Positions 29,301-63,840 of a DNA stretch of 64,000 bases are shown piece by piece. Source of the stretch: Cyanophora paradoxa CCMP329 (lineage: Eukaryota; Plantae; Glaucophyta); NCBI GenBank assembly GCA_004431415.1, contig QPMI01000615.1, positions 161,542-225,541 on the forward strand, read 5' to 3'. A model generated the notes under the pieces. That model searched no databases, was not told where the DNA came from, and saw only the letters and a program-made list of their open reading frames with translations. Positions within the stretch are counted from its first letter, which is position 1. Each line of letters starts with the position of its first letter. The position numbers and the translations under genes were made by a program.

Positions 29301-29848
29301 CATTGCAGAGTCGTTTGATAATAATATTTAATGAATTGTTTCAGGTTCAAGCACGAATTCGAACGCGATGAGGCGCAGGTGGATTCCGCCGTCGAGGTGC
29401 GTATCCGAGCCGAAACAGATCCAGCTGCAGAGTTTTCCGCAACCTATGCGCGGTTTGCAAGCGCTCAGGCCTAGGCCTGATCATACGTACACGCCCGCAG
29501 GGTCTGGCCGATATGCATTTCGAGACGCAGGTGCCGCTGTGCAAGTTCTTCGCGGCAGGCTTCTGCAAGTGGGGGGGCAACTGCTGGTGCGCATGTCGAC
29601 GTCATCGGAATTTCACATCTAATTTCTTCTCGACGTCCGCCCGCGACGCGCCTAGGCCTGATCATCCGTGCGCGCGCAGGTTCCGCCACGAGGAGCAGGG
29701 CGCCGCCTCGAGCTCAGCGGAGCCGCCTGCGCCCGCCGCCGCCGCCGGCCCGAGCTCGAGCTCTCCCCCGGCCGCCTCGAGCTCGAGCTCGGCCGCCGGC
29801 TCCGGCCGCCCCGCGCCGCAGTCGAGCCGCCGCGCGCCCAAGGCGTGA
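26400..29848 (+). CDS. Multi-exon protein with three CCCH (C-x7-C-x5-C-x3-H) zinc fingers and a helical N-terminal region
   Basis: PCRFFAQGSCRDGDQCR|FKH (28513-28650), PCRFFAQGSCFAGDQCR|FKH (29197-29353), LCKFFAAGFCKWGGNCW|FRH (29536-29689). Stop TGA at 29846-29848. Apparent upstream stops fall inside GT..AG introns. Start uncertain. Confidence 0.75.
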
Positions 29849-31291
29849 GGGGCCTCGAGCCGATCGCCCTCAGGGCCTGCCAGGCTGGCAAAGCTAGCGC
29901 TCTGGGGCCGGCCGGGGGGGCCCATTGCCAGCCGGCCTCGTTCAACGGTTCAAATTCTTATCTCTTCATAGTTGGCAGTTCGTTGTTGAACGCTGTAGGT
30001 CATTTTAGGATTCCCATGGCTTGTTGGCCCTGCGCATGCGCATACGAATGTCAGCGTACGCAAACTACAAATTACTTCTGGAATTCGAATTCTTCGTTGA
30101 ATATTCAATGCTGTAGGTCGATAGCTAAAAATAGCTACTAGGCTAGCCGCTGAGCTGCAGGAGCAATAGGAAAGTTCTCATATGCACCATGATCATTTAA
30201 TTTCGAATCTCTTCGTAAATTCACAGCGCGCGTGTCCTTACCCTGAAGCTTTAATTTTTTGGGGAAGGACCCCCTTCCCCTTCCCCCACTTGGGGGTGTT
30301 CGGGTGCCCACCCTAGGCCAAAATGAAATGTCCCGACCTCCCAAAACCCGGGTTTTCTCGCCGGATCCTAGCAAGGCATGTCCCTAGGAGTCCAAAAACG
30401 TGTACTGGGAGATCCGGGTCCCGTCGGGTCAACCTGGAATGGGCAATAACACATTTTCGGAAAATGCAATCTAGCGCCTCACCAAGTGGCGGTATATCTG
30501 CCGGACCGAGTGCGCCTGAATGCGCCTGATACGCCCAACGATTCATGTCATACATGCCGAGACCGGAGGGGCACAGGGTGGTCCGCTAGGCCGCCTCAAG
30601 TACCTGTTGTACCGGACGCTGAAAAAAAATCGCTCCTGAGAGTTGGAGGCGATATCGTGTTGCAGTACCCGTGCTTTAAGCCGGCAAGCTAGCCGACAGG
30701 CTCGCTAGCTGGCCAACTAGCTGAGCACCGGCTATCGGCTTGTTGGACTTCCGCGCGCGCGTGGCGTCCGTCGACATCGTACCGACCACGGCGAGTGAGC
30801 GCCGAGGTTCTGCTCTGCTGCATCGATCGGATCGCTCGCCCGGGCCGGGCCGCTCGAGCCTCACTCGTGCGCTCGCTCGTGCGCTCGCCGTCGGCGCTTC
30901 CACGCTCCACGCTCCACCGATTCCGGCCGCACCAGGTACGAACTCGTCCACCTCCGGCTGCGCATGCCCGCCGCGCGCGCCGTCCTAGGCCTAGGCCTGA
31001 GCGCCCTCTCACTTCCCGCGAGACACAGCAGCGAGCGTCGCAGCTGGCCATGGGCATCAACATCGCATCTGTTCCATCGGTGCGCATGCTGCACGGCTGT
31101 GCTCGTCGCTTCCTCTGCCGCGGGGGAAGGGTCCGGTTGCAATTGCTCGACTCATGCTTGCCACCCTCAGTCTTGCACCCGCATGCAATCGACCGGGTCG
31201 AACCACAAGCAAGCATCACATCACCTCCAAGACCTCGGCCTCCGCCGCGTACGCGCTAAGCGCCTGCCGCTAGCGCTGCGCCTATAGCTAG

Positions 31292-31470
31292 CCTCCGCCC
31301 GCGCCCGGCCAACGCCGGCGCGGCGGCGCGGCCGCCGGGCTCCTCCCGCTCCTCGGGGGCGGAGGCGCAGCGGGCGGCGGCGCGGCTCGCCGCTCGAGGC
31401 GGAGGCGCGGCGGGCGCGGCGCCGGCGCGGCTCGCCGGGCGGGGCGGAGGCGCGGCGGGCGGCGGCGCAG
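31292..31470. repeat. GC-rich minisatellite, left part of the LTR element's target
   Basis: GGCGGAGGCGCGGCGGGCGGCGGCGCGGCTCG units; the array resumes at 63841. Confidence 0.8.
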
Positions 31471-31768
31471 TGTTGCCGATAGGGTTTCCTAGCCGTTAGT
31501 GCTTTGTTTGCACTTCGTTCGCAGTAGTACCGTGACTTGACCCGCGGCTTCTCGCGATTTCCTGAGTCACTGTACCCCTGTACGAAGATGCGACCCTAGC
31601 TACTTTTTCTGACTCTAGCTTGATACTTTCCGGTAGCCGTGTCCTAGGGTACACAGTAGTCTGTGATTAGCAGCTTTCTCTTGCAACGTGACAGCCTGCT
31701 CGCCTGCTGCTGGTACGCTACGGGAAGGTTGCTAAGGTCTACTGGGACGTATAAAACCTCCTAAAACA
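31471..31768 (+). repeat. 5' LTR (298 bp)
   Basis: TGTTGCCGATAGGG..CCTAAAACA; matches 63550-63840. Confidence 0.95.
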
Positions 31769-32029: not shown

Positions 32030-34745
32030 GTGCCGCGCGCGCATCGGGGATCGGTTGCGGCGGTCCGACTCGAACGACGGTCACGGGCCAGCTCGCGTAC
32101 CGTACTGCGGTCGCGGCCCGACGGCAACGTCTACGTCGAACGACCGCGTGATGGAGCGCGAAGGCATGACTTCCGGCGAGATGGCCCGACCTTCCCCGGC
32201 CAACTGACAATGCTCAACCGCACGGCCCGAGTCGCAGCGGCGCACGCCGAGGAGATCGCGCGCCGGCGGGTCATGGGCGCGGAGCCGCCGCAGGCGATCA
32301 AGATGGAGGACGGCAAGATGGGCCACACCACCGGGATTCCCGTCTCGCCCAACGGCGTCTTCCAACATCACAACGCCATCCGTTCGGCTACTCGCGGAGA
32401 CAAGAAGTACTCCCTGCTGGACGACGGTTCGCAGGCGGCGTACCACGCCGTCGATTTCGGTGTCCGTTCGCTGCCGGCGGGACTAACGGAAGTCTACCGT
32501 TCGACGGTCGAGTTGCACCGGTCTCTCGTCGAAAACCTCGTCGACGCAGAGAGCGAGCTCACGAAGGCGAAGGCGACACTCGCGACGGCTACGGAGGAGG
32601 CGGCCAAGGAGGCGGCGCAGAAGGCCGTCCAGACGCGACAGGCCGTCGTCGACAAACTCCGGGCTGAGATGCCCTCGGACATTATTCGCGGCGTCCCCTC
32701 GTACATTAAGAGCCTCGTTCGCATGATTGACCCCGCTGAGCGCAAGCGTCTCAAGGAGGAGCTCATCGCGGCGTACGATGGCACTCAACTGGACCGTATT
32801 TTCGCCAACATCTGTGACCTCATCGCGTTCACTGACCTGCCGCGTGACAAGACGGGCCACACTGTGCAGGCGCTGGACGTCTATGACACGCTCGAGCAGC
32901 AGATCACGGAGCGCAAGACGCTACACCACGGCCTGTACTCCGGCCTCCCGTACGAGCAGCAGCGCAAGGCCAATTACGACCTGGCGCTGAATCTACTGCC
33001 GAAGCTGAAGACGATGGCGCAGGACCTGTCGCCGACCGATGGGATGACTCCCAAGGACAAGGAGACCTGGTTTAACCTCTTCTGCACTCGTGCGCAGTCG
33101 CTCATTCGGGAGGCGGGCTTTCTGATTGTGACGACGACTGCTGGGGAGCCCTCGATTCCTACTGGGAATTCGAAGAAGGGCGCCAGCATCAACGCGGCGA
33201 ACGTCGACGGGTACGATTACGACAACGATGGCGACGACGGGTACACGGCGCCGTACAGCGGCACTCCGTACACCCCACCGCCTTCGTCGTCCCCTGCGCC
33301 CTCGGCCCCGCACTCGCAGTTACTCGGCTCTTCGGTCAATCTCGTCCACACGACGCCGTCGACCCCGCCGACAACCAATCCGATCTACCAATCCGCCCTC
33401 CCCGCGCCCAGCAGCCGGCGCCGGGCCACAAGCCCGTCCCCGGCTGCTGCGACTGGCACGCACCGGTGCCCGGGAAGGACTACGGCAATCGCCCGCCCAT
33501 CGGCCGCCCCTACGATTACGCCCGTACGCAGACGGTCACGGCGATCCGTACGAGCCAGGGCTACCCGCGCGACGCGCGCCCGAGGGTGAGGCCCGGCACC
33601 AACGATCACATTTGCACACGTTGTCGGTCGTTGGGAGCCGCGGACATCCATCACTACTCTGACGACTACCACGAGTGTTGCTCTCACCCGTACCGTCGGG
33701 AACTACTCAAATTCGTCAACCAAGGCTGCCAAGACCCCGAGGTCCTGGCTGCGGCCCGCCTCTGCGGCCTCATCCCTGGCGGCCCGCAGGCACCGTCCTA
33801 CAACGCGGTCCCCCCGCCGTCGAACTCTGTACCCGTCGCTCCGGCGCAGCTACAAACCGCCCCTTGCAGGAACTGCGGCGAGCACGGCCACCACGCGTCG
33901 GCGTGCACGAAGCCGGTGCGCTGCTACAACTGCGGAGGGAGGGTCACACGCAGAACCGCTGCCCCAGTGGCAAGCGCCAGCACGACGGCGGTCCCCCACA
34001 CGGTCCGTCCCCGAAGCGTGGCCCCGATGGTGGTGCTGGCGGCGCAGGAGGCGGCGGGCACCGTGGTGGCCATCGCGGCGGTGGCAGGGGCGGCTACCAG
34101 AGCGGCGGTGGAGGCGGCGGCCAAGGCGGGACGGGATCTAACGCCACCCTCCTCGGCAATCCCGCCCCGATGCAGCGCCCGACTGGCCCCGTTGTTGACG
34201 CGCCGTCTTCGCGCCCGACTGGCCCCGTTGTTGACGCGCCGTCTTCGCGCCCGGCTGGCCCCGTCACTGACGCGCTGCCTTCGCGCCCGACTGGCTCCGT
34301 TGCTGACGCGCCGTCTCCGCGCCCGACCGGCCCCATCGCTAACGCGCCGCCCCCGAACCCTCGCCCGACTGACCACGGAGACGCCGTGCAGTCCGGTGGT
34401 CCTGACTCGGGCCGGGAGACTGAGGCTACGACGGACAGCCTGGCCATGGTACCGATCGCTCCGGTGCAAACTGTCCCGATCACGCCGACGCAGCCCTCGG
34501 CATCGGACATCGCGCACTTCGTTCGGGACGTCAACGCCACGACGGCGACGCAGCCGGTAACGTCGGCGGCGGAGAGGACGGCCCCCGTCCCCGTCGCCAT
34601 CCCCGTCGCTGAACCCGCGTCGCCGTCCCCCTCGTCGACTCACGCGACCGGCCCGTCGTCGCCGGCCCCGTCTGACTTGTCGACAGAGATGGAAACGGGA
34701 AGCCGTACTGCGGCCGAGTCCCGTGTTCCAATTCGGTGTGCGCAG
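32030..34745 (+). CDS. gag: Gag-like protein with zinc knuckles (frameshifted in this assembly; cut by the nested element)
   Basis: ORFs 32030-33589, 33466-34560 and 33675-34832 join by single-base shifts. CRNCGEHGHHASAC and CYNCG(G)EGHTQNRC at ~33865-33962, followed by an RGG/Gly-rich tract. Start codon uncertain (ATG at 32210 possible). Confidence 0.8.
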
Positions 34746-34752
34746 CCCCGGC
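34033..34752 (+). repeat. ~720-bp direct duplication, copy 1 (copy 2 at 46633-47347)
   Basis: By eye identical except five single-base deletions in C/G runs in copy 2. Confidence 0.95.
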
Positions 34753-35329
34753 ACTTTTGGCTCACCCACGCATTGCGTCGAAATTTGAGTCATTTTTCGA
34801 CGCAGTGCTCCGAAATTTCACGCAATGCTTGAAAATGCGTCGGGGTTTCAAGCAGCGCTTGAAACCCCACGCAGTGCGACGCAGCTGCCCGAAACTTCGA
34901 AGCACCGCGACTGCGCCAAATTCCCACTGCGTCTGGCTGCGTCGAGCGATGCAGCCTGGCAGCGCTAGCAGGCGTATCCTATAGCTAGTACTAGTAGCTC
35001 GTAACCCATGCGGATTGCGGATTCAATGATTGCAGCGCGCGCGCTCGGGATCCACTGGGGCAGATCCGAGTGCGCGGGCGGATTGCAGCGCGCGCGCGGC
35101 TGTACCAGTACCGCAGTACTAGTATATACGTATACGTACGTGCATGCTTAGTTTGCTCGCGCTTCTGGGCCGCTGGGCCGCGGCCGGGCCACAGCGGCGA
35201 CAGGCCCGTGGCCAGCTATTGTGAATCCGTGGCATGCGCTGTTCATAAAAAGATGATGAACTGGAAGTATACAGGCTGTCCGGGATCCGAAATCTATCCC
35301 ACGCACCAGCCCCTGAAGCCCGAATCCGA

Positions 35330-38300
35330 GCGCTAGCTAGTTGCCGAGAAAACGAAAACTAACTGCAATCAGCTGCCGAACAGCGGGTAGTGCTGCTGTC
35401 CTGCCTGCAGCATCGTCCGCCGGCGGCACAGGCAGAATGCGCCCTCGCCGCACTCGCTGCGGCAAGTCACCGCGCTCGCTGCGCTCAGAATAAGCGGACT
35501 CCTAGCTTAAAGAGAGAAGTGGGAAGCAAGGGGACGTCTGCGCACCGAGGAGAGGGTAGCAGTCCCGCTTCCTCCGCATCCAGCATCCCTTGCCCGTGCC
35601 CGACGTCGAAGGCAGAGCGCTCGCTGCGCACGGAGAGGAATGTCAATCTAATGAAAAGAGAATGCGCGCCGATTAACAGACCGCACCTGCGGCCGAGCGC
35701 CCACACCATGGACTGGAAGAGCGCCTCCTCTGGCCAAAAGGGCGGAGGCGTTGATGGCGCTCGCCGCGCTGCGGCATCACGGTCAGCGCGCGGATCGAAC
35801 GAAGATAAGCGAGTGGTGACCGGCAAACGGACCGCTGTGCACCACAGCAGGGTGAGTGAGCAGCAGGCCGGCTCGCGCCGCGTCCGGGCCGGTCCGGCAT
35901 CCCTCGACCGCGATGCCGAAGCTGCGTTCGGAGCGTCAACCGAAAGAAGAGAAGAATGCGCGCCGGCAAACGACCGCACCTGCCGCACCTGCGCCCCAGC
36001 GGCCGCAAGCACAAGAACTCCGAGGCCGCGGCCGTCCAGAAGCCACGCGTCCGAGAACGGCACCCGCTCCGCTGCGCACGCGGCCGGCGTCACAAAAACA
36101 TCAACGCGAGAGTAGCGGAAACAAGAGCGAGCACCTGGCCTGCGGGAGAAGACGCTAGGCGAACTGGATGGTGGTGCTCTGCTCGCGCGGGCCAGTCACC
36201 CCGTTCCCTGGACCGCCAGCGGAATGAGGGATTGGGGCAAAGGAGATGAAACGAAAAAGCACCTTGCTTCGCATCGGCAGCCGCCTTCTCCTTTTTGCGC
36301 GAGCCGACCAAAAGAAGGAACACTTGGCGGCGGCGGCCGGGCTAAGAATGCAGATCAAGGGCGCTTGAAGAGGCAAGAACGACGCGTACACGAGCGCTCT
36401 TCGCCACGAGCGGGCGCCCGCCGCCCTGGGGCAGCGCTCTGCTTTTGAAATCAGGCCGGCGACAGGCGGGGGACGCGAGAGGATGCAAGTAGGCACCTTC
36501 GAACGTCGTTCGCGCTCGAGGCTCGTCAAGTTCGCGGCAGCTGTGCGGACTCCGTTTGACCTGTTTGAAATTGTGGAGTAAGGGAGACCAGGATGCGCTG
36601 CGGTGGAGAGCCCAGCGCCGACGCACCGAGATTGCATTGCGTCCCGTGCTGGAGGCCGCAGCCAGTTCTTGCCCTGCGTGCTCTTCAAAGTGCAAGGCCG
36701 GAATTCGGGGTACACAGCTGTTGGGCGAAAGCGGCAGCGACACCAACAGCGATATCGATCGAGGATGCTTGAGGACGCCCTTCGGCTCAGCTTTCCGAGG
36801 AAGCCTGAGCGGTCCCATGCTCCTTCGCAGCTCGCTCGGCCGCGGTGCCGAGCACGTTGGCGGAAGCTCGCAGATGCGGCGCGCGGCCCTTTCGTTAGCT
36901 ATAGCTAGGCGCATGTGGCCCGTGTTCTCGCAGCTGCATGTCTATGCCTGGCGTGGCCGTGTTTCCGTGCGGCGCCGCGTTCACGGCCTGCCTTCCTCCC
37001 ACAAACCGACGACGTGCGTCTATGCCGTGCCCTCCGCGTTCCACGCGTGACGTACAGCTCACTCGATTTCGCAGGGATCGCCGGCGGTGAGCCCCGTCGG
37101 CCCAGTTGGTTGGCCCTGCGCCCAAGCCGAGCCAAGGTGCGGCTACCGCCTGGACGGGGTGCGGGATCAGACGGGCTGCATCCCGTTTCTCGCTGTTGAT
37201 CTCTCCTTCGTAGCGGGCGATGGCGTGCCGGCAAGCTGCTGGGCGGCGATCGCGCCCTGCCGAGCGCGTCGCCATCGCCGGGGTGGGCCACCGGACCATA
37301 GCTTTGCGTCAGCGGCGCGCGAACGCATGTCTCACGATTCTTGCTTGCGTTCCAGGCGCTGGATCGCGCGCGCCGTCTCCAGGCTCCGAATTCTGGACCC
37401 CTCTTCCACAGCTTGGTGAGGCTCAGGCCTAGACGAGGTGAGTTGAGCGGTCTGTGTGCGTACGCGTCGCTGACAAGGCGCTCCTGTCGCGCAGGATGAT
37501 CGAGTCCCGGGGCGATGGTCGGAGGGAGCGGAGGGCGGCAGCATGGATTGCACGGCGGGGCGTAGGATCGGCGGGCGGCGGCCCGGGGCGCACGCCTCGC
37601 GCGCCGCCGGCTGCCCGCCCGCCCCGGCCCGCCCCGGCGCCGTCGCTTCGCCCGCCCCGGCGCCTTCGCCCCGCTCCGCCCCGTCGCTTTCGCCCCGCCC
37701 CGCAGAGTCGGTGCGCCGTGCTGAGCGCCCTGCCCGGCACAGCCCGGCCTGCCTGCTGCTGACGCCCTCGCAGCTCTCGAGGATTTTGAATTTTCGGGGC
37801 GTCCCGCTGCCGCGGGAGAGGATCTTCGAGCGCCCCGCCGCCCCCGCCGTCCTCAGGGGACAGCGCCGGGGGTCGCGGAAGCTCAGCAGGCGGCGGCGCG
37901 GCTCACCTGGCGGGGCGGAGGCGCGGCGGGCGGCGGCACGGCTCGCCGGGAGGGCGGCGGCGCGGCGGGCGGCGCGCAGCTCGCCGGGCGGGGCGAGGGT
38001 GCGGCGGGCGGCGGCGAAGCTCGGCGGGCGGGGCGCGGGAGCGGCGGGCGGCGGCGCGGCTCGCCAGGCGGGGCGGAGGCGCGGCGGGCGGCGCCGCGGC
38101 TCGCGGGGCGGGGCGGAGGCGCAGCGTGCTGCGGCCCGGCTCGCCGCACGGGGTGGAGGCGCGGCTGGCGGCGGCGCGGCTCGCCAGGGGGGGCGGAGGC
38201 GCAGCAGGCGGACAGGACGGCAGGCGCGGCGGGCGGCGGCGTGGCTCGCGGGGCGCCGCGGTGGCGCGACGCGGCTTCGATTCGTGATCACTGATCATGA
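35330..38300. repeat. Left arm of a long internal inverted repeat, including a G-rich minisatellite at 37870-38275
   Basis: Reverse complement of ~42715-46030. Shared ORFs lie on opposite strands, e.g. 36090..36323(-) vs 45154..45387(+) and 36342..36914(-) vs 44562..45122(+). Confidence 0.95.
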
Positions 38301-38329
38301 GCGTGATGATCTCTTGTCATTCAATTTAA

Positions 38330-41300
38330 ACAGATCCGAGGCTGCGCTGCCCTGCAACTTGGCACAAATGAAGTGTTGGCAATTGGGGCCCACTATTGCT
38401 TGGCGAGGCACCAGCACCTTTTCAGCGCTTGCCACTATTAAAATCAAATCTAGCGCCTTTGATATAGTCCAGGTACGCTTCTCCAGTCAGTGAAAAGGCC
38501 GGGATCTTTTCCTGGCTTCATGATCAATTCTCATGATCATCATGAACACTGCATGCATGGGTGCTCAGATCCTCACTGCGAGCCAAATTGAAACTCGGGG
38601 CCCATATTGCATACGCCCGCGAGCATGCTGTTGGGGGTTCTCGAGGGCGCTGGATTTGATTATGAAGTCGGTTGAAGACAGATCCGAGGCTGCGCTGCCC
38701 TGCAACTTGGCACAAATGAAGTGTTGGCAATTGGGGCCCACTATTGCTTGGCGAGGCACCAGCACCTATTCAGCGCTTGCCACTATTAAAATCAAATCTA
38801 GCGCCTTTGATATAGTCCAGGTACGCTTCTCCAGTCAGTGAAACGGCCGGGATCTTTTCCTGGCTTCATGATCAATTCTCATGATCATCATGAACACTGC
38901 ATGCATGGGTGCTCAGATCCTCACTGCGAGCCAATTGCAAATTGAAACTCGGGGCCCATATTGCATACGCCCGCGAGCATGCTGTTGGGGGTTCTCGAGG
39001 GCGCTGGATTTGATTATGAAGTCGGTTGAAGACAGATCCGAGGCTGCGCTGCCCTGCAACTTGGCACAAATGAAGTGTTGGCAATTGGGGCCCACTATTG
39101 CTTGGCGAGGCACCAGCACCTTTTCAGCGCTTGCCACTATTAAAATCAAATCTAGCGCCTTTGATATAGTCCAGGTACGCTTCTCCAGTCAGTGAAAAGG
39201 CCGGGATCTTTTCCTGGCTTCATGATCAATTCTCATGATCATCATGAACACTGCATGCATGGGTGCTCAGATCCTCACTGCGAGCCAAATTGAAACTCGG
39301 GGCCCATATTGCATACGCCCGCGAGCATGCTGTTGGGGTTCTCGAGGGCGCTGGATTTGATTATGAAGTTGGTTTAAGACAGATCCGAGGCTGCGCTGCC
39401 CTGCAACTTGGCACAAATGAAGTGTTGGCAATTGGGGCCCACTATTGCTTGGCGAGGCACCAGCACCTTTTCAGCGCTTGCCACTATTAAAATCAAATCT
39501 AGCGCCTTTGATATAGTCCAGGTACGCTTCTCCAGTCAGTGAAAAGGCCGGGATCTTTTCCTGGCTTCATGATCAATTCTCATGATCATCATGAACACTG
39601 CATGCATGGGTGCTCAGATCCTCACTGCGAGCCAAATTGAAACTCGGGGCCCACATTGCATACGCCCGCGAGCATGCTGTTGGGGGTTCTCGAGGGCGCT
39701 GGATTTGATTATGAAGTCGGTTGAAGACAGATCCGAGGCTGCGCTGCCCTGCAACTTGGCACAAATGAAGTGTTGGCAATTGGGGCCCACTATTGCTTGG
39801 CGAGGCACCAGCACCTTTTCAGCGCTTGCCACTATCAAAATCAAATCTAGCGCCTTTGATATAGTCCAGGTACGCTTCTCCAGTCAGTGAAAAGGCCGGG
39901 ATCTTTTCCTGGCTTCATGATCAATTCTCATGATCATCATGAACACTGCATGCATGGGTGCTCAGATCCTCACTGCGAGCCAAATTGAAACTCGGGGCCC
40001 ATATTGCATACGCCCGCGAGCATGCTGTTGGGGGTTCTCGAGGGCGCTGGATTTGATTATGAAGTCGGTTGAAGACAGATCCGAGGCTGCGCTGCCCTGC
40101 AACTTGGCACAAATGAAGTGTTGGCAATTGGGGCCCACTATTGCTTGGCGAGGCACCAGCACCTTTTCAGCGCTTGCCACTATCAAAATCAAATCTAGCG
40201 CCTTTGATATAGTCCAGGTACGCTTCTCCAGTCAGTGAAAAGGCCGGGATCTTTTCCTGGCTTCATGATCAATTCTCATGATCATCATGAACACTGCATG
40301 CATGGGTGCTCAGATCCTCACTGCGAGCCAAATTGAAACTCGGGGCCCATATTGCATACGCCCGCGAGCATGCTGTTGGGGGTTCTCGAGGGCGCTGGAT
40401 TTGATTATGAAGTCGGTTGAAGACAGATCCGAGGCTGCGCTGCCCTGCAACTTGGCACAAATGAAGTGTTGGCAATTGGGGCCCACTATTGCTTGGCGAG
40501 GCACCAGCACCTTTTCAGCGCTTGCCACTATTAAAATCAAATCTAGCGCCTTTGATATAGTCCAGGTACGCTTCTCCAGTCAGTGAAACGGCCGGGATCT
40601 TTTCCTGGCTTCATGATCAATTCTCATGATCATCATGAACACTGCATGCATGGGTGCTCAGATCCTCACCGTGGCACTGCGAGCCAATTGCAAATTGAAA
40701 CTCGGGGCCCACATTGCATACGCCCGCGAGCATGCTGTTGGGGGTTCTCGAGGGCGCTGGATTTGATTATGAAGTCGGTTGAAGACAGATCCGAGGCTGC
40801 GCTGCCCTGCAACTTGGCACAAATGAAGTGTTGGCAATTGGGGCCCACTATTGCTTGGCGAGGCACCAGCACCTTTTCAGCGCTTGCCACTATTAAAATC
40901 AAATCTAGCGCCTTTGATATAGTCCAGGTACGCTTCTCCAGTCAGTGAAAAGGCCGGGATCTTTTCCTGGCTTCATGATCAATTCTCATGATCATCATGA
41001 ACACTGCATGCATGGGTGCTCAGATCCTCACTGCGAGCCAAATTGAAACTCGGGGCCCACATTGCATACGCCCGCGAGCATGCTGTTGGGGTTCTCGAGG
41101 GCGCTGGATTTGATTATGAAGTCGGTTGAAGACAGATCCGAGGCTGCGCTGCCCTGCAACTTGGCACAAATGAAGTGTTGGCAATTGGGGCCCACTATTG
41201 CTTGGCGAGGCACCAGCACCTTTTCAGCGCTTGCCACTATTAAAATCAAATCTAGCGCCTTTGATATAGTCCAGGTACGCTTCTCCAGTCAGTGAAAAGG

Positions 41301-42750
41301 CCGGGATCTTTTCCTGGCTTCATGATCAATTCTCATGATCATCATGAACACTGCATGCATGGGTGCTCAGATCCTCACTGCGAGCCAAATTGAAACTCGG
41401 GGCCCACATTGCATACGCCCGCGAGCATGCTGTTGGGGGTTCTCGAGGGCGCTGGATTTGATTATGAAGTCGGTTGAAGACAGATCCGAGGCTGCGCTGC
41501 CCTGCAACTTGGCACAAATGAAGTGTTGGCAATTGGGCCCACTATTGCTTGGCGAGGCACCAGCACCTTTTCAGCGCTTGCCACTATTAAAATCAAATCT
41601 AGCGCCTTTGATATAGTCCAGGTACGCTTCTCCAGTCAGTGAAAAGGCCGGGATCTTTTCCTGGCTTCATGATCAATTCTCATGATCATCATGAACACTG
41701 CATGCATGGGTGCTCAGATCCTCACTGCGAGCCAAATTGAAACTCGGGGCCCACATTGCATACGCCCGCGAGCATGCTGTTGGGGGTTCTCGAGGGCGCT
41801 GGATTTGATTATGAAGTCGGTTGAAGACAGATCCGAGGCTGCGCTGCCCTGCAACTTGGCACAAATGAAGTGTTGGCAATTGGGGCCCACTATTGCTTGG
41901 CGAGGCACCAGCACCTTTTCAGCGCTTGCCACTATTAAAATCAAATCTAGCGCCTTTGATATAGTCCAGGTACGCTTCTCCAGTCAGTGAAAAGGCCGGG
42001 ATCTTTTCCTGGCTTCATGATCAATTCTCATGATCATCATGAACACTGCATGCATGGGTGCTCAGATCCTCACTGCGAGCCAAATTGAAACTCGGGGCCC
42101 ACATTGCATACGCCCGCGAGCATGCTGTTGGGGGTTCTCGAGGGCGCTGGATTTGATTATGAAGTCGGTTGAAGACAGATCCGAGGCTGCGCTGCCCTGC
42201 AACTTGGCACAAATGAAGTGTTGGCAATTGGGGCCCACTATTGCTTGGCGAGGCACCAGCACCTTTTCAGCGCTTGCCACTATTAAAATCAAATCTAGCG
42301 CCTTTGATATAGTCCAGGTACGCTTCTCCAGTCAGTGAAAAGGCCGGGATCTTTTCCTGGCTTCATGATCAATTCTCATGATCATCATGAACACTGCATG
42401 CATGGGTGCTCAGATCCTCACTGCGAGCCAAATTGAAACTCGGGGCCCATATTGCATACGCCCGCGAGCATGCTGTTGGGGGTTCTCGAGGGCGCTGGAT
42501 TTGATTATGAAGTCGGTTGAAGACAGATCCGAGGCTGCGCTGCCCTGCAACTTGGCACAAATGAAGTGTTGGCAATTGGGGCCCACTATTGCTTGGTGAG
42601 GTACAAGCACCTTTTCAGCGCTTGCCACTATCAAAATCAATTCTAGCGTTTTTGATATAGCCTAGATACGCTTCTCCAGTCAGTGAAAAGGCCGGGATCT
42701 TTGCTGGGCCTCATGATCATGATCAGTGATCATGATCATCATGAGCACTA
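38330..42750. repeat. Tandem array of ~348-bp units (12 full + ~0.6 partial)
   Basis: ACAGATCCGAGG starts at 38330, 38678, 39032, 39379, 39727, 40075, 40423, 40785, 41132, 41480, 41827, 42175 and 42523. Confidence 0.98.
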
Positions 42751-45700
42751 CACCGCCTGGCGACCCGCGCCACCGCCCGCCGCGCCTCCGCTCCGCCCCG
42801 CGAGCCGCGCCGCCACCCCTGAGCCCCGCCCCGTCCGACGAGCCGCGTCGCCGCCCGACGCGTTTCCGCCCCGCCCCGCGAGCCGCGGCGCCGCTCGCCG
42901 CGCCCCCGCCCCGCCCGGCGACCCGCGCCGCCGCCCGCAGCGCCTCCGACCTGCCCGGCGGGCCGCGCCTCCGCCCGCCGCGCCTCCGCCCCGCCCCGCG
43001 AGCCGCGGCGCCGCCCGCCGCGCCTCCGCCCCGCCCCGCGAGCCGCGCCTCCGCCCGCCACGCCTCCGCCCTGCCCGGCGAGCCGCGCCTCCGCTCGCCG
43101 CGCCTCCACCCCGTGCGGCGAGCCGCGCCTCCGCTCGCCGCGCCTCCGCCCCGCCCTGCGAGCCGCGTCTCCGCCCGCCGCGCCCCCGCCCCGCCCGCGA
43201 GCTGCGCCGCCACCCGCTGAGCCCCCGCCCTGCCCGGAAAGCCGAGTCGCTGCCCGACGCGCCTCCGCCCCGTCCGGCGAGCCGCGTCGCCGCCCGCCGA
43301 GCCTCCGTCCCGCCCCGCGAGCTGCGCCGCCGCCCCCCGCGCCCCCGCCCCGCCCAGTGAGCCGCGCCGCCACCCTGCCCGGAGAGCCGCGCTCGCCGCG
43401 TCTCCCACCTGGCCGGAGGGAGCTGTGCCACCACCCGCTGTCTCGCTGAACCCGCCAGGCAAGTTAAGCGGGGGGAGAGAGGGGGGAGGGAGGGAGAGCC
43501 GTGGGCGAGGGGAGGGCATACTCCGAGGGCGCTTCGGCGCGGCGGCGGCAGGGCTCTTGCGGCCGCGGGGTGCACAGGCAGCCGCGAGGGCGGGCGCGGG
43601 GCGCTTGTCGTTGTGCGGCGCGGCGGGGGCGGCGGGGCGCTCGAAGATCCTCTCCCGCGGCAGCGGGACGCCCCGAAAATTCAAAATCCTCGAGAGCTGC
43701 GAGGGCGTCAGCAGCAGGCAGGCCGGGCTGTGCCGGGCAGGGCGCTCGGCACGGCGCACCGTCTCTGCGGGGCGGGGCGAAAGCGACGGGGCGGGGCGGG
43801 GCGACGGCGACGGGCCGGGCGAAGCGACAGCGCCGGGGCGGGCCGGGGAGCCGGCGGGGCTGCACGGGGCTGCACGGGGCGTGCGCCCCGGGCCGCCGCC
43901 CGCCGATCCTACGCCCCGCCGTGCAATCCATGCTGCCGCCCTCCGCTCCCTCCGACCATCGCCCCGGGACTCGATCATCCTGCGCGACAGGAGCGCCTTG
44001 TCAGCGACGCGTACGCACACAGACCGCTCAACTCACCTCGTCTAGGCCTGAGCCTCACCAAGCTGTGGAAGAGGGGTCCAGAATTCGGAGCCTGGAGACG
44101 GCGCGCGCGATCCAGCGCCTGGAACGCAAGCAAGAATCGTGAGACATGCGTTCGCGCGCCGCTGACGCAAAGCTATGGTCCGGTGGCCCACCCCCGGCGA
44201 TGGCGACGCGCTCGGCAGGGCGCGCTCGCCGCCAGCGGCGTGCCGGCACTCCATCGCCCGCTACGAAGGAGAGATCAACAGCGAGAAGCGTGCGGCAGTT
44301 CGCCTGTCCCCCCGTTCCCGGCCAGGCGGCCGCCGCACCTTGGCTCGGCTTGGGCGCAGGGCCAACCAACTGGGCCGACGGGGCTCACCGCCGGCGATCC
44401 CTGCGAAATCGAGTGAGCTGTACGTCACGCGTGGAACGCGGAGGGCACGGCATAGACGCACGTCGTCGGTTTGTGGGAGGAAGGCAGGCCGTGAACGCAG
44501 CGCCGCACGGAAACACGGCCACGCCAGGGCATAGACATGCAGCTGCGAGAACACGGGCCACATGCGCCTAGCTATAGCTAACGAAAGGGCCGCGCGCCGC
44601 ATCTGCGAGCTTCCGCCAACGTGCTCGGCACCGCGGCCGAGCGAGCTGCGAAGGAGCATGGGACCGCTCAGGCTTCCTCGGAAAGCTGAGCCGAAGGGCG
44701 TCCTCAAGCATCCTCGATCGATATCGCTGTTGGTGTCGCTGCCGCTTTCGCCCAACAGCTGTGTACCCCGAAATCCGCGGCCTTGCACTTTGAAGAGCAC
44801 GCAGGGCAAGAACTGGCTGCGGCCTCCAGCACGGGACGCAATGCAATCTCGGTGCGTCGGCGCTGGGCTCTCCACCGCAGCGCATCCTGGTCTCCCTTAC
44901 TCCACAATTTCAAACAGGTCAAACGGAGTCCGCACAGCTGCCGCGAACTTGACGAGCCTCGAGCGCGAACGACGTTCGAAGGTGCCTACTTGCATCCTCT
45001 CGCGTCCCCCGCCTGTCGCCGGCCTGATTTCAAACGCAGAGCGCTGCCCAGGGCGGCGGGCGCCCGCTCGTGGCGAAGAGCGCTCGTGTACGCGTCGTTC
45101 TTGCCTCTTCAAGCGCCCTTGATCTGCATTCTTAGCCCGGCCGCCGCCGCCAAGTGTTCCTTCTTTTGGTCGGCTCGCGCAGAAAGGAGAAGGCGGCTGC
45201 CGATGCGAAGCAAGGTGCTTTTTCGTTTCATCTCCTTTGCCCCAATCCCTCATTCCGCTGGCGGTCCAGGGAACGGGGTGACTGGCCCGCGCGAGCAGAG
45301 CACCACCATCCAGTTCGCCTAGCGTCTTCTCCCGCAGGCCAGGTGCTCGCTCTTGTTTCCGCTACTCTCGCGTTGATGTTTTTGTGACGCCGGCCGCGTG
45401 CGCAGCGGAGCGGGTGCCGTTCTCGGACGCGTGGCTTCTGGACGGCCGTGGCCTCGGAGTTCTTGTGCTTGCGGCCGCTGGGGCGCAGGTGCGGCAGGTG
45501 CGGTCGTTTGCCGGCGCGCATTCTTCTCTTCTTTCGGTTGACGCTCCGAGCTCAGCGAGCGCTGCGCCGTCGCGGCGACCGCGTTCCGGGCGCTCTCAAT
45601 CTCGGTGTGGGCGCTCGGCGACAGGTGCGGTCTGTTTATTGGCGCGCGTTCTCTCTTCTTTTGATTGACATTCCTCTCCGTGCGCAGCGAGCGCTCTGCC

Positions 45701-46030
45701 TTCGACGTCGGGCACGGGCAAGGGATGCTGGAAGCGGGGACGGGCCTCCTGCTCTCTCCTTGCTGCGGTGCGCAGACGTCCCCTTGCTTCCACTTCTCTC
45801 TTTATGCTAGGAGCCCGCTTATCCTGATGCGCGCAGCGCAGCGAGCGCGGCGACGTTCCGCAGCGAGTGCGGCGAGGGCGCATTCTGCCTGGGCCGGAGG
45901 CGGGCTGCTGGCGATCGGCTGGGCATGCGCAGGCGGCGGACGATGCCGCAGGCAGGACAGCAGTACTACCTGCTGTTCGGCAGCTGATTGCAGTTAAAAC
46001 GTTAGTTTTCCTTTTCTCGGCAACTAGCGC
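42715..46030. repeat. Right arm of the long internal inverted repeat, including a C-rich minisatellite at 42750-43400
   Basis: Reverse complement of ~35330-38300. Confidence 0.95.
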
Positions 46031-46632
46031 GGGGGACGACGCCGCTTGCAGGTCATTGCGTATTGTGTAAAGCCCTTACAGCCTAAGTTGCAGGCGGGGC
46101 AGATTGGGGCAGATGAGCTCGAGGGCGCCCGCGCACGATCGGCCACGAGGCCGCTAGCTGTTTCACAGTGTGCGCACATCTACACGAGGGCGCCGCGCGG
46201 GCTCGGGATTGGCCCCACGAGGGCGCTGAGCTGTGTGCGCATGCGCACATGTACTACGGTACGACCTAGGGGCGCCGGCGCCACGCGTACGCGTGCCCCG
46301 TCGAGCTTGACGACCGACTCTCTCTCTCGGCGAGCTCGAGCCGCGTCGAGCTCAGGCCCATAGCAACGAGCTCGACGACCGTCGACCGGTACCGGCCACG
46401 CTGCTGGCTATAGCTACGTATACGCCGGCGCAGTGCGTCCAGCTGCGTCGAGCGGCGCAGTGCGTCAAACTTCGAGTGCGTCGAGCGACGCAGTTTCGTG
46501 AAACTTGGCGCACTGCTTGAAACTGCGTGGAGATTTCGAGCAGTGCTTCATTTCCGACGCAATGCTTGAAATTCCCACGCAATGCTTGAAATTTCCGACG
46601 CAATGCGTGGGTGAGCCAAAAGTGCCGGGGTA

Positions 46633-47347
46633 GTGCTGGCGGCGCAGGAGGCGGCGGGCACCGTGGTGGCCATCGCGGCGGTGGCAGGGGCGGCTACCAG
46701 AGCGGCGGTGGAGGCGGCGGCCAAGGCGGGACGGGATCTAACGCCACCCTCCTCGGCAATCCCGCCCCGATGCAGCGCCCGACTGGCCCCGTTGTTGACG
46801 CGCCGTCTTCGCGCCCGACTGGCCCCGTTGTTGACGCGCCGTCTTCGCGCCCGGCTGGCCCCGTCACTGACGCGCTGCCTTCGCGCCCGACTGGCTCCGT
46901 TGCTGACGCGCCGTCTCCGCGCCCGACCGGCCCATCGCTAACGCGCCGCCCCCGAACCCTCGCCCGACTGACCACGGAGACGCCGTGCAGTCCGGTGGTC
47001 CTGACTCGGGCCGGGAGACTGAGGCTACGACGGACAGCCTGGCCATGGTACCGATCGCTCCGGTGCAAACTGTCCCGATCACGCCGACGCAGCCCTCGCA
47101 TCGGACATCGCGCACTTCGTTCGGGACGTCAACGCCACGACGGCGACGCAGCCGGTAACGTCGGCGGCGGAGAGGACGGCCCCCGTCCCCGTCGCCATCC
47201 CCGTCGCTGAACCCGCGTCGCCGTCCCCTCGTCGACTCACGCGACCGGCCCGTCGTCGCCGGCCCGTCTGACTTGTCGACAGAGATGGAAACGGGAAGCC
47301 GTACTGCGGCCGAGTCCCGTGTTCCAATTCGGTGTGCGCAGCCCGGC
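46633..47347 (+). repeat. ~720-bp direct duplication, copy 2
   Basis: Repeats 34033-34752, then continues into unique retrotransposon sequence. Confidence 0.95.
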
Positions 47348-50300
47348 GGGGCGTCACTGCCGGCAGTATCCGCGACCTCATCAACGCTGGCCTCCGCCGG
47401 CACGACCACACTCGCATGTCCGCCGCCTTGGCTCCCGTCACGTCCAAGAAAACCCCGCTCTTCACTCGAAACTTTGGCCGTATGCACCGCCCGCGCCCGA
47501 ACGCCATCAATCCCGTCGCCCGCGTCGCAGTCACGAGGTCGCTCACCTTCGCGGCCGCCCCCTCGGCGAAGAGCACGAACTCCGACGCTGACTCTGTGCG
47601 GGAGCCGAAGACCCGGACGTACTGCGCCCTGGGGGACCCCGTCACAGAGTCGCCGATGGACACTGCACTCGGCCCGCTAACCTCCAAATCGAGCACCGAC
47701 TCCCCCGCAGCCACCTCGCAGCAGGAGGGGAACGTCTCGAAGGAAGTGGGCGGCCGACCCCGAACTACAAGGCCCGCCCGCCAAGATGCCCGAAATCGAC
47801 TCGCTACCGGCGGTCGAGGGCTGCGAGTCCTTGGTACCCCTTTGCACTGACTGGCTCGACAACGTTGCTTACAACATGCACACTCGCCGTGTTAACAACC
47901 GCATGCACGTCGACGGCATCCAGTGCACTGACTGGCTTCGTGATGGCATCCCTTCGAGCGACCAGCGCCAGATCCACGCGCGTACCATCCTTTACTGCCC
48001 CGCCCTCCAGATGCTCACGACGTACCTCGAGCCGAAGGGCCCCGGTGTCTGCTGGGCTCGCGTCCGCAACGCTATCGATGCGGAAGGCGACTCGGAGGAG
48101 GCGCGCGCGCACCGCTTCCCCAAGCCCCACGACAACATGTACCCCGTCTTCACGCAGGCCTCCAATTACCGTACCGCGGTATTCACGGAGGATGCGCACA
48201 TGCCTCGCCGTCGGACCTGTCTTTCGCCAACGAGACGTGTGCTGACTGCCACCCCCATGTCGTCGGCCGCCAGGAGAATGGTACCCTTGTTGCCCGCCCC
48301 ATTCCCTCGGCACACCGTCGTGACGCGCCCAATGACGGACTTCGTACTGCTCACTCCGCGCTCATCGCTGCGCTTGAAAGCCTCCCTACGTCGCACCCCG
48401 TTCGTGACCCGACCAGGGAGATGGAGTTCTTTGTGATCGCCCGCGACATCTCCGGACACGCGAAGAACGGGCGGTTCCCGATCCCGCCGGCGCTCGACGT
48501 GAACCCCGGCATCCCGTGCGCTGACGGCACTCACGCTCACCACAGCCACCCGCATTGGCACTTGCTGGCGACCCGCCGCTCATCAACCCGAAAGGCCACA
48601 GTGAGCACAAGCGTCTGAATGCGGCCGTCACACGCATCATTGCAGACACGGCCACTGAGGATGACGTGACAACGTTGCGCACGTGGATCGCAATCGCCCG
48701 TGAGACGACGACTATCGCGGCAATTAACACTAACATCTCGAACACCAACGAGCAGCTTCGCCGGCCTACCGGGGCGCTGAGGGCGAGCAGCTGTTACACT
48801 TGGTTGAAATGGCAGCGATGGCCATCACGAACACGGGCGCCCCGCCGCCTCGCACGCGGCAGGCTGCGGCCAACCACGTCACGAGTGTACTGCGTAAGGA
48901 GCTCGAGGCATTCGATGTTGACACTACGGTTCAGGCAATCGTCAACGCTCTGTGCGCCCGTCGTGTCTTCACTTTCACCGACGGCGCCATGGACACAACC
49001 GACGCGCCGCCTGCACCTACGACAACGCTGACGCTCCCAGGAGCTGCTGTCGTCGAGTCCCTCCTGAACCGTGTCAAGACGTCCTTCACCGACGCGCAGA
49101 ACCGCAGCCCAACATTCATGCGCCCCAACCGACGAACGGCCGCTGTCAATTACGTTGAGAGCACACTCCGCACGTACCTCCGTGGCTACGACGTCGAGTC
49201 TACGATCCTACTTCTCGTCTACATTCTCGAGCGCGAGGGTGAGCTACGGTTCGCCTCAGGCCCTGACGCGACTTCGGCAAAGGCTGCTGACGCCTACTCT
49301 CGTTTCGTCGCGGCAAACGCTCCGACCGACCCCGTCGCCGGACCCAGCTCTGTCGCGACGGCAGAGGGCCTCGCCCCTGAGGACAAGACGCCAATCGTCC
49401 CGCCGACCACGCCCACTCCACCCGCGCCCGCCGTACTGCGGCCCAAGGCGTCGGAGGACAGGGCTGACAATGACCCCATCAACCGCAACCGGAAGTTGCG
49501 CGAGATGCTGATGGACATTGCGGAAGACTCGATCACGCTCATCGCTCGTCGCCACCAGGCAGCGGGGAGGTATGAGCGCGAGGGTGGAGACCGCGTCTTC
49601 GCCTCTCGCACGGTCGAGAAGATCATGGTCAGTGTTGGGGGACAGCAAATTCTTCTCTTCCTGTCGCCAGTCGACATGCCTGCACCGTGCCACACGTGCA
49701 GCATCGGCCCGATGGCTCACCCGTCATCGTGAACCACCGGCTCCGTGCATCAGTGATCAGCATTGCGCACCGCTACTACGAGTACATCGACTCGACCACG
49801 GGCAACACGGTGACAATGACTAACGTCGAGCTTCAGGAGCACTGCCGCCTCTGCACAACGCCGCCGTACATGGAGTTCGTCCGCAATTGCCCCGTACCGT
49901 CGCCAACCTCACGCCAGCGCACGCCGTACCCGAGTACTCTGCGACCTGACGATGCACCGGCGGACATCACGCTCGACGCTCTGTACGGAGTGACGATGGA
50001 AATGAAGACGCTCTTCCTGCGGATTATCGGTCTGTTAATGGATATCACCCACAGGGAACGACGTCTTTGACGGGAACGACGACTGGCCTCGGGTCGCTGA
50101 CATCTTCCTTAACGTCGACGTCAGCCCCTTCACCGTCCGCGCCAGCACCTCCGGCCTGGCGTTCGCGACGCGAGTACTGGACCGATAGGCACTCGGCCAA
50201 TCATTCTCGCCCCGGGAGTTGTCAACACCTCTGGGCAGGACACGTCCCGACTCGCGCGAACGACTGTGAACGCGTCGCTTCCCGTCTGCTTGTCGGCACC

Positions 50301-53300
50301 GGCGTTCTACCATGCTCACGCGTTAATGCACCCCGTCGATGAGCCGAACACGCGCCTCGGCCCGACACCAACTGATCTTCCGCCCTACCCGGTGCCTGAG
50401 ACCACGGTCGCTGCAGCTGGGGGAGTGAGCCGCAAGTTGGCGTCGATTTACGTCGCTGCCGTTCTACACGACTGGCCGGCTCGACAGCGGGACAAGATTA
50501 AGCCGCATCTCACTCTCCGAACCAACGACGTCGACATGGAGTACTTGCGACTCGCCGCCGAGAACGCGCGACTTCGGGACCCGACGCAGTTTTCGGCGAG
50601 GTACCTCGAAGTCCACAACGTGTTGACAGACATCCTTCGTCGCCGCACGCCTGGAACGCCGTCCCCGACCACTCCGCCGACAAGCACGCGCAGCTGCTGG
50701 CCGACGAACAGCTCGCACGTGAACTGCAGGCTCGCCTCGACGCCGAAGCTGCCAAGGGAGAGGACCCGGTGCAGGCCGCGGCGCAAGCCCCCTACTTGCA
50801 GGCTGCAATCGGTGGTATTGCTCGTGGCCGCACCATGGACGCCCGTCGCCGTACTGCGGCAGCACAGGCTCCACCGCGCCAATCGGCGAGGCACGGGGGA
50901 ACGGTCAGGGGCCGCGGCCGCGCGCTCCCGATTCATACCAGCCGGCCCCAGACCCCGGGCAACCCTCACTACCACGACGACGACATGACGTGCCCAACGG
51001 CACCGGTGACACCGCCGACCGACGCCCGGAGCCCCCGGCCCCGCGGAACGACCCACCCCCTGCGCCCGAGGTGACGGCCTCGTCGACGGACACTCCGGAC
51101 GCCCAGCCCGTTGCACCCGCGACGACGACTCCGGACGCCCAGCCCGTTGCACCCGTGACGACGACTCCGGTGACCCCGACGCCCGCTCTCGAGACGCCGG
51201 TCTCGTCGACGGCCGCTCGAGATGCTTCGCCCATCGCACCGGCGATGGCGACCTCGCTGACGACCCCGCACAGCGTCCCGTCCCCCACGGCCGTGGCTGC
51301 GGTCTCGACGGCCCCGTCGCCTGCGCCTGAGCTACTGGCCCCGTCCGACGCCCCGCCAGCCCGGCCACGACTGTGACGGCGGCCCCGCCGCAGAGCCCGG
51401 CCCAACCCCCGATGCTGCCGATCCCGTCACTTCACCCGACTACACTGCACCGACCGACGCGTCGATGCCTGACTCGACGACTGCCGACTCGTCGGGCACT
51501 GAGAGGACCGAGGACGTGCCCATGGGCGACCCGCGCGTTTCGAGGGGAATCATCGTCGACACGCCGACCTTGCCGAGCCCTCACGACGACCGTGACAGTC
51601 CTCCTGACACCGACGAAGACACGTCCAGCGACTCGGAGCCCGAGATCAAGGACGTGGCCGCCGACCTTGGACACCGCCACGCCTGGACGATCCTTCGCCT
51701 CAAGCCCGTGGTGCACAACCAGCTGCGTGCGTACCTGGACACGCCGCGACGCTTCATGGTCACAACGACGACGACGGATTGGCGCAAGACCCCTGAGACG
51801 CCGACCCTCTTCGCCGCCAGCGAGCTCACGAGCTGCATGCACCTCGCAGCTGCCCGCAGCAACACGCCTACTGGGCAACCGTTGCTGGGTACTCGCCCGA
51901 GTGACCAGGCTCACTACCTCCTTCAACATCTGACCGAATTCCGCTCCGTCATCCACGTCATCATGCGCCTCGCGCGGGCTCAGCCCTTCGCGCCTGGGGA
52001 GACGGCGACCACGTGGCCTCACCCGAACGACCCGCTCGCCGATGTCCTCGGACGGCCAGAGATGCTGGAGCTGTTTGGTTTGACACCGACAGAGTTCACT
52101 CTTGTACACCAGTCCAAGACTCCAGTCGTACCGTGCATCCTTCAGGTGGCTGTCAACCTTGCCCGCAATCTCCGGACGCTGCACTACGACGTGGAGATGA
52201 CGGAGAGCGATGAACGGTTCTTGAACTTCGACAAGATCACGAACACGGCGACGCGCCTTGCAACAATCAGGCAACTGGTCCAAACTGTCAAGTTCACGGC
52301 CCCGCTCACAGGACCTGACGACATCTATCTGTCTACGCTTCGACACGGTTCACCGCCGCCCGACATCGCCTTGTCGATGCGTTCGACGGCCCTGGCGCGG
52401 GCGTGGGACATCGCTGCATACTTCGACCATTACAAGTGGGACGAGACGCGCGACCGCTACGGGGATAGCCGATTTGCTCACCTCTACGACGTTCGTGACC
52501 CAGCACCGAGCTCCGACCGTCCATGGCCGACGAGTCACGCGCCGTTGCTGTCAATGCTCACCGAGCAAGTCGAGAACGTACTCCGCCTCGTCAACATCAC
52601 AGCCGACGTCGAGGGCCCCGGCAACTTCCTGCGCCGTTACTACACGTCCCGTTTCAACCCGAAATCCGACGCGAACCCGGCTACGAACCAGCGGGCGACC
52701 GCCGAGCTCGCGGAGGAGATCCGGCTGAACAGCCAGTTAGCAGTGGTCGCGGCACGCGATGTCCATCGTCTGCGCACGCCCCCCGTCAGCGAGTCCGACC
52801 TACACCACTGTCTTCGGCACGGACTGTCCCGTCACCGCTCCGGCGTCCTCCCCTCAAATTTCACGAACGTCGTCGCCGCGTCTGTCACGGAGACGACTGC
52901 GCTGGCAAGGCTCGCCGAGCTACATGACACCACCGTTGTCGCGATGTCAATCACTACGTTCATGCACAAGCGTCAACTCGCCAAGAAGGGCAAACCGATC
53001 CGTCTCGAATCGCGACTGCACGCCCCCGTCTTCACCCCGAAGCAGCCCGAGCCAGCTGTCGAGCTCTATTACAACTCTGACCGTTACATAATGGTGCACC
53101 CTGAAGAGGCGGCGCTCCTGGCGTGCAAAACTGCGTGGCGCTCCCATATCCTCCAGCTGACTCTCGAGGCCATGCGTCGCGCGTACAAGCTCGAGACGGA
53201 GTCAAGCACTCGTACTGCGAGCAAGCTTGCTTTCGGCCTCGTCGCTCGACTCGACACTGCACTTAGCAAGGCTACGACCACCCAGCGCTTGGCGGTAACA

Positions 53301-63549: not shown

Positions 63550-63840
63550 TGTTGCCGATAGGGTTCCTAGCCGTTAGTGCTTTGTTTGCACTTCGTTCGC
63601 AGTAGTACGTGACTTGACCCGCGGCTTCTCGCGATTTCCTGAGTCACTGACCCTGTACGAAGATGCGACCCTAGCTACTTTTCTGACTCTAGCTTGATAC
63701 TTCCGGTAGCCGTGTCCTAGGTACACAGTAGTCTGTGATTAGCAGCTTTCTCTTGCAACGTGACAGCCTGCTCGCCTGCTGCTGGTAACGCTACGGGAAG
63801 GTTGCTAAGGTCTACTGGGACGTATAAAACTCCTAAAACA
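63550..63840 (+). repeat. 3' LTR (291 bp)
   Basis: Differs from the 5' LTR by 8 single-base deletions and 1 insertion; no substitutions seen. Confidence 0.95.

Follow-up and report, generated by a model that had tools for sequence, protein, structure and literature searches.

What is the mirror-symmetric stretch of 11,885 bp at positions 34746-46630 of a 64,000-nucleotide window of the glaucophyte Cyanophora paradoxa CCMP329 (assembly GCA_004431415.1, contig QPMI01000615.1, positions 161,542 to 225,541 of the forward strand): a mobile element, a centromere-like domain or an artefact of assembly? The window is the whole stretch of DNA that was analysed, and all positions below refer to it. A reading made from the sequence alone had proposed a non-autonomous foldback-like mobile element that carries and amplifies a satellite, with a possible centromere-like role. 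The mobile, satellite-carrying part of this proposal is supported by paired arms at several loci: with a probability of roughly 0.8, the stretch belongs to a young family of non-autonomous cut-and-paste transposons with foldback anatomy, present in ~10-14 copies. The sequence-only reading missed the arrays of ACGCA motifs, the divergent spliced RNAs of the arms and the location in the gag region of a gypsy retrotransposon with a direct duplication of ~715 bp.

Anatomy and dispersal of the element

The element (34746-46630) is bounded by terminal inverted repeats (TIRs) that are exact over 35 bp, as had been claimed, at 34746-34780 (forward strand) and 46596-46630 (reverse strand). The left TIR begins with CCCCGGCAC and contains an ACGCA-T-TGCGT palindrome in its inner half; the termini are CCCCGG..CCGGGG. 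Self-comparison and global alignment verify the mirror-symmetric layout. The spacers between TIRs and arms had been described as non-symmetric, which holds for their inner ~380 bp (left 34961-35335, unlike the right spacer and with many 3-bp mirror scars; z = 0.38) but not for the outer ~180 bp, which are related in the inverted sense (z = 5.0) and carry ACGCA motifs. Motifs with an ACGCA core occur in both orientations, 9 at the left end (34768-34945) and 10 at the right end (46434-46608), whereas 215 bp of the window hold 0.4 on average and 4 at most elsewhere; they are candidate binding sites of a transposase. An interpretation of the spacers as decayed arms is ruled out by the z value of the inner part.

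The arms are inverted repeats of ~2.5 kb (left 35336-37849, right 43621-46028) and lie inside the TIRs and spacers, i.e. they are internal and not terminal. Their identity reaches 98.4% in the core (99.6% over the 1.2 kb of 35926-37140) and 93.8% in the outer part. An origin as two independent inverted elements is ruled out, because the arms possess no termini of their own. A left-only exon segment of ~210 bp (35708-35920, reverse strand) is diagnostic for left arms of other copies, and a right-only linker of 241 bp (43380-43620) recurs in copies on three further contigs. Two introns of the outward transcription unit, at 35642-35702 and 35935-35996, are 79% alike, i.e. an exon and intron are duplicated inside the arm. 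GC-rich minisatellites with a 40-bp unit follow inwards, the right one (42753-43379, reverse strand) inverted relative to the left one (37864-38276, forward strand); both have 88% GC and are ~82% alike.

The centre is occupied by a tandem array of 12.6 units of 348 bp (38330-42749, forward strand) with 51% GC and a CpG observed/expected ratio of 0.65. The arms have 67% GC, and the DNA around the array 62-67%. Full units are 0-4 substitutions apart, the final partial unit is 90% alike, and a 16-bp inverted word at both array edges extends the symmetry to the array. The inverted arms, the inverted minisatellites and the comparatively AT-rich satellite of the sequence-only reading are thereby verified in coordinates and identities. 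Each unit contains a 24-bp inverted repeat (unit positions 105-128 and 317-339, E 9e-4) and folds little better than shuffled sequences (z = -1.7); no further unit occurs elsewhere in the 64-kb window. Units 2 and 7 bear 3-bp mirror scars (38932, 40667, 40685), of which a 6-bp insertion and a single-nucleotide polymorphism are common to both and an 8-bp insertion is restricted to unit 7; this pattern suggests transposon visits that may later have been copied within the array.

A search of the element against Rfam finds no RNA family. Arm open reading frames (ORFs) and the gene models of the family lack significant Pfam matches and the element contains no transposase, in agreement with the earlier observation. 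Short-read contigs, assembled independently, cover each module in 30 of 30 bins of 42300-47900, and left-specific and right-specific contigs are distinct; therefore the arms are not a palindrome artefact, a misassembly that had been named as a possible refutation. None of the short-read contigs displayed spans the whole element or either outer junction.

Other copies are seen as Augustus gene models of Cyanophora paradoxa in EukProt, not as DNA, with membership judged by exact 8-residue words in common with the window (86-100% cover, minisatellite included). Diagnostic left-arm models are found on tig00001027, tig00021045, tig00000842 (twice), tig00000383, tig00021357, tig00021762 and tig00021761, together with an inward model on tig00021358; right-arm models occur on the same contigs with the exception of tig00021761, and additionally on tig00021326, tig00020780 and tig00020934. 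Near-identical arm models are thus found at 11-12 places (11 contigs). At 8 places the left and right models are separated by a few gene numbers at most (two of these by accession order only), i.e. the arms co-occur in pairs. Models g20800-g20803 of tig00021357 are covered to 97-100% by words of the window, which probably corresponds to this contig. On tig00000842 a right-arm model (g4865) is immediately followed by a left-arm model (g4866), and two copies therefore adjoin. On three other contigs, inward models cross the right-only linker and the minisatellite and end at an identical stop at the array edge (95-100% word cover). Three models continue from the arm into a Cys-rich repeat piece, a tyrosine recombinase piece and unknown exons, none of them present in the window flanks or the gypsy; the copies therefore have different neighbours.

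Depths of DNA contigs are 680 (left end), 859 (right end) and 1585 (arm) in the first run, with minor contigs at ~62, and 784, 1037 and 1994 in the second, with minor contigs at ~73. Taking the minor-contig depth as single copy yields 11 left ends, 14 right ends, 25-27 arms and 16-19 gypsy copies, which suggests 10-14 copies of the element, in agreement with the 11-12 loci counted. The 348-bp unit reaches a total of ~60-260 copies on the same depth scale. This is the load of 10-14 elements, and the unit is low-copy and far from a megabase satellite; amplification, as previously proposed, applies within the element only, and the total abundance is about what the copies would carry. A diverged arm relative (~73%) with loose contig ends at 44917 and 45047 is also present in the genome and points to an older sister family. 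Scans with the TIR in viral and metagenome contig collections retrieve no match.

According to the preferred reading, a transposase encoded elsewhere would bind the TIRs and the ACGCA-core arrays, and the element would have moved as a whole, with TA as the probable target. The arm, a decayed intron-bearing transcription unit together with the minisatellite, would have been duplicated in inverted orientation within the element, with gene conversion keeping the arms alike. The 348-bp array would be cargo that expands and shrinks via unequal exchange, and a bidirectional promoter in each arm would give rise to outward and inward spliced RNAs.

Junctions within the gypsy gag region

The element is inserted in the gag region of a gypsy retrotransposon (31471-63840, forward strand), recognised by Pfam and self-comparison, with long terminal repeats (LTRs) at 31471-31768 and 63550-63840, a GCAG target site duplication (TSD), a gag zinc knuckle and reverse transcriptase/RNase H. 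The gypsy comprises ~32 kb including the insert, and its LTRs show no substitutions. In self-comparison a direct gypsy repeat of 724 bp (99%) flanks the element on both sides. The left copy of the ~715-bp gag duplication (34031-34745, forward strand) ends with AG at the left junction and recurs at 46631-47341. The right copy (46633-47341, forward strand) has CCCCGGC as its native continuation, identical to the first 7 bases of the TIR, according to alignment and short-read contigs (with a C inserted after 47341); one-base gaps in this copy are assembly errors according to the short reads. TA (46631-46632, forward strand) stands directly 3' of the right TIR, where the left gypsy copy and the main gypsy short-read contig have TG. 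As regards the TA duplications that the sequence-only reading had proposed to look for, TA is present at the right junction, the left flank is AG, and a 715-bp duplication takes the place of a short TSD. One RNA contig terminates exactly at the TIR plus TA (46632), which suggests, from this one contig, that several copies have TA and then diverge in the k-mer graph. The 7-mer CCCCGGC has 7 occurrences in 19.8 kb of gypsy (3.5e-4 per site).

An assignment of the flanking direct repeats as LTRs is ruled out, as they are gag-coding DNA without TG..CA ends and the true LTRs start at 31471 and 63550. The same applies to a 3-bp CAG/TAG TSD, since the gypsy natively has TGG there and the RNA contig stops 2 bases beyond the TIR instead of 0 or 3. 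Footprints of the TA-CCC-TA type are absent from the intergenic DNA of the window.

We tentatively explain the insertion step as a one-sided insertion started by the transposase and completed by repair. In this aberrant entry the left end would have been joined to a site other than TA, at which the following 7 bases are those of the TIR start, and the right end would have kept its TA and joined 715 bp upstream, by which the interval would have been duplicated. Aberrant insertions of Sleeping Beauty possess one junction with TA and another at a non-TA site where the displaced target sequence is identical to the end of the transposon (PMC5801840, PMC7987939), so that one-sided TA and mimicry of the transposon end on the other side are common to both. 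In contrast, Sleeping Beauty is an engineered Tc1 element in cell lines, and the sections of both papers considered here report no flanking duplication, whereas the TA of the present junction is non-native and 715 bp are duplicated (PMC5801840, PMC7987939).

More doubtful, and a rival for the insertion step only, is an origin by repair, in which a DNA break or a stalled fork within the gypsy would have switched template at a microhomology, copied a donor element, or else an excised circle containing a TA junction, and returned 715 bp upstream. Such copying would fit the 7 bp of microhomology on the left and the match of 3 bp (GGT) on the right, the TA is not native to the gypsy and may derive from the flank of the donor, and the adjacent right-arm and left-arm models on tig00000842 indicate that tandem donors may exist. 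However, both junctions coincide exactly with the TIR ends (plus TA), a precision that copying by repair would not need, and end mimicry is a documented side reaction of transposases.

An assembly chimera, in which flanks of two different insertions (left of the first, right of the second) were joined over the 12-kb repeat, is unlikely and would leave the family itself real. The genome, probably haploid, was assembled from PacBio RSII data with Canu into 712 contigs (PMC6704402), and the one-base deletions of the right copy, absent from short reads, point to weak polishing. No junction contig is displayed, and the main gypsy contigs run uninterrupted across both insertion sites, which is expected if one of ~16 gypsy copies is interrupted but is no proof. 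Such a chimera presupposes that the same gypsy family was hit twice within 715 bp, though, and the matching GCAG TSDs, the identical LTRs, the same minisatellite on both sides of the gypsy and the distinct left-end and right-end contigs argue against it.

Several points weigh against a cut-and-paste family as outlined above. This copy lacks a short TSD of 8-10 bp, 7 bp or 3 bp, evidence for TA as the specific target comes from a single junction and a single contig end, and neither junction is among the short-read contig rows displayed. TSDs, TIRs and arrays of the other copies are not seen directly, the family being known from gene models, and tig00021358 and tig00021761 may be redundant contigs. 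Contig depth is not equal to copy number, with the single-copy depth inferred from minor contigs, and no transposase partner has been identified for the element.

The surroundings possess further repetitive features. Gypsy RNA contigs end at 47331, before GTGTGC (47331-47332 and 34735-34736), which is probably a splice donor, at a distance of ten bases from the left insertion site, and the gag RNA of the gypsy seems to be spliced. Between gag and reverse transcriptase, ~12 kb (47342-59300) contain frameshift-broken ORFs without Pfam matches. A second transposase-less element (863-6344) has CACAG..CTGTG ends, an 84-bp TIR (93%) and a 3-bp CCC TSD, and carries the GC minisatellite of the 11,885-bp element as an array of 1.2 kb with a 44-bp unit. 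A probable third element (~30287-31470 and 63841-64000) starts with CACTTGG, and its GC minisatellite is split by the gypsy, so that a triple nest, i.e. the foldback element in the gypsy in the third element, is probable. The GC minisatellite is common to three element types in the window (78-88% alike) and very high-copy in the DNA runs. A host gene ~1.5 kb left of the gypsy (28400-29700) is intron-rich, with repeated CCCH-like zinc-finger exons and an 86-bp internal repeat.

Transcription of the arms

Each arm contains two spliced units, one outward and one inward, starting near 36780 in the left and 44700 in the right arm, as concluded from divergent splice signals and RNA contigs; the contigs carry no strand, and strands are inferred from the splice signals. 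The right outward transcript (44700-46070, forward strand, ends approximate) has introns at 44982-45039, 45215-45269 and 45343-45405, whose GT..AG joints occur in two RNA runs and are absent from the DNA runs. The left outward transcript (35372-36780, reverse strand, start approximate) is supported by RNA joints and by left-arm-specific spliced letters in RNA contigs, with introns at 36496-36439, 36262-36208, 36134-36072, 35979-35922, 35686-35624 and 35545-35479. An RNA contig of 724 letters aligns to 44699-44461 and 43978-43791 of the right arm; its 213 unaligned letters equal in number the total of three exons (62, 69 and 82) that are delimited, on the opposite strand, by four introns with GT..AG ends (44461-44401, 44338-44261, 44191-44119 and 44036-43980), which belong to the right inward transcript (42554-44699, reverse strand, 3' end approximate). 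The left inward transcript (36777-38295, forward strand), based on gene models and symmetry with the right arm, has introns at 37014-37074, 37137-37213, 37283-37355 and 37438-37494 and enters the minisatellite. At three other loci predicted models fuse outward arm exons to downstream exons of unrelated neighbours.

The arm RNAs are most likely non-coding by-products of a decayed gene. It is improbable that the arms encode a small functional protein, i.e. a cargo or accessory gene behind the success of the element. Transcription of the arms, splicing at canonical introns and gene models of 160-220 residues at many copies speak for it, but models over identical arm DNA use different frames and the RNA-supported outward splice form has stops in all three. 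The left outward transcript possesses no stop-free frame longer than ~190 codons. Comparison of the arm models with Pfam, Atlas and 1.84 billion representative proteins retrieves only the family itself and one 73% relative, which mixes frames; the best Atlas scores (0.82 and 0.78) are at chance level. A brute-force splice search was discarded, as the long frames it returns are meaningless in GC-rich DNA, and RNA-supported introns were used instead.

Most arm bins have an RNA depth of 27-166. The first array bin, in which DNA is 5-10 times as deep as on the arm, has an RNA depth of 5-7; one RNA contig extends 200 bases into the last array unit. Since RNA is shallow in the array interior, read-through to the far arm is unsupported, and with it the multi-kb hairpin that the sequence-only reading had derived from such transcription. 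Cyanophora paradoxa possesses homologs of Dicer, Argonaute and RNA-dependent RNA polymerase (PMC3700990), and small RNAs may therefore occur.

Affinities and significance of the family

The element shares with the foldback structural class its kb-long inverted repeats, arms of modular build that contain tandem repeats, and a non-coding middle; dispersal, a further property of this class, is seen through gene models on 11 contigs and three unrelated fusions. Tetris, a foldback element of Drosophila virilis, has ~220-bp repeats inside TIRs that reach the ends, and 8-10-bp TSDs (PMC4079207). Both are non-autonomous with long modular inverted repeats containing tandem repeats, a non-coding middle, a link to emerging satellites and a transposase that was not found (PMC4079207). 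In contrast to Tetris, the main array is central here, the true TIRs measure 35 bp, ~380 bp of unrelated spacer precede the arms and the flank is TA; neither an 8-10-bp TSD at this copy nor a long TIR continuous to the ends, as in Mutator-type foldback elements (FB, Tetris), is present. Long-TIR copies of Galileo (P superfamily) likewise extend their TIRs by recruiting internal sequence and tandem repeats, and some consist of nothing but kb-long inverted repeats, but 7-bp TSDs and copies with a P-type transposase are known for Galileo (PMC4168063), neither of which is seen here.

Non-autonomous CACTA/CMCT elements have in common with the present element short TIRs, subterminal direct and inverted motifs over a few hundred bases and captured satellite arrays (PMC8978399). 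A further parallel is that the CACAG-ended element with a 3-bp TSD at 863-6344 shares its GC minisatellite with the present element. The subterminal repeats are found here as 9 and 10 motifs in ~200 bp, but the ends are CCCCGG instead of CAC..GTG (CA..TG), the inverted arms are internal and of kb scale, and a 3-bp TSD is missing (CAG left, TAG right, native TGG). TA targets are known from Tc1/mariner, ESTA and PHISTA (PMC8969392, PMC12730594), with TA TSDs in ESTA elements (PMC12730594). As regards the 2-5-bp TSD of CMCT and the TA duplication of Tc1/mariner, the present copy has TA on the right side only, AG on the left and an RNA contig end at TIR plus TA. A Tc1/mariner-like enzyme is put forward as a tentative candidate for mobilisation; a CMCT enzyme is almost as likely, and an enzyme of another type somewhat less so.

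Very improbable is a mobile chromatin cassette, in which the AT-richer satellite core would nucleate CENH3 or heterochromatin, the transcribed arms would splice outward into neighbours and each jump would create a small centromere-like domain; its promoter half alone finds some support, in the predicted fusion models at three loci. Centromeres of Komagataella phaffii occur once per chromosome, are mutually unrelated in sequence and possess a 1-kb unique core and a transcription coldspot (PMC5010909). The likeness lies in the outline only, i.e. an inverted repeat of ~2 kb around a central core (PMC5010909), whereas here a near-identical mobile family with TIRs has transcribed arms and a tandem-array core. 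Least credible of all is the centromere-like or heterochromatin-seeding role that the sequence-only reading had considered, with inverted arms around an AT-richer CENH3-binding core: this outline, an array that is CpG-poorer (0.65) and AT-richer than its surroundings and little transcribed, and 10-14 copies, not absurd as a chromosome number, speak for it, but the copies are near-identical, young and equipped with transposon ends, lie in or beside genes and other transposons with unrelated neighbours (two adjacent on one contig, one nested in a retrotransposon), have transcribed and spliced arms instead of a coldspot, and enclose a tandem array and not unique DNA.

Current views are not overturned by any of these findings. 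Unknown repeats constitute 11.5% of the Cyanophora paradoxa genome (PMC6704402), and glaucophyte transposons are almost undescribed. At least 20 gene models of the reference proteome derive from the arms and are probably spurious; the arms may also supply neighbouring genes with promoters. If the junctions hold, the insertion would be a natural example of end mimicry of the Sleeping Beauty type, with a 715-bp duplication as its outcome. Transposons are known to give rise to satellite DNA by way of foldback elements with tandem repeats, and this family, young, low-copy and apparently variable in unit number, would offer a clean case for watching that transition.

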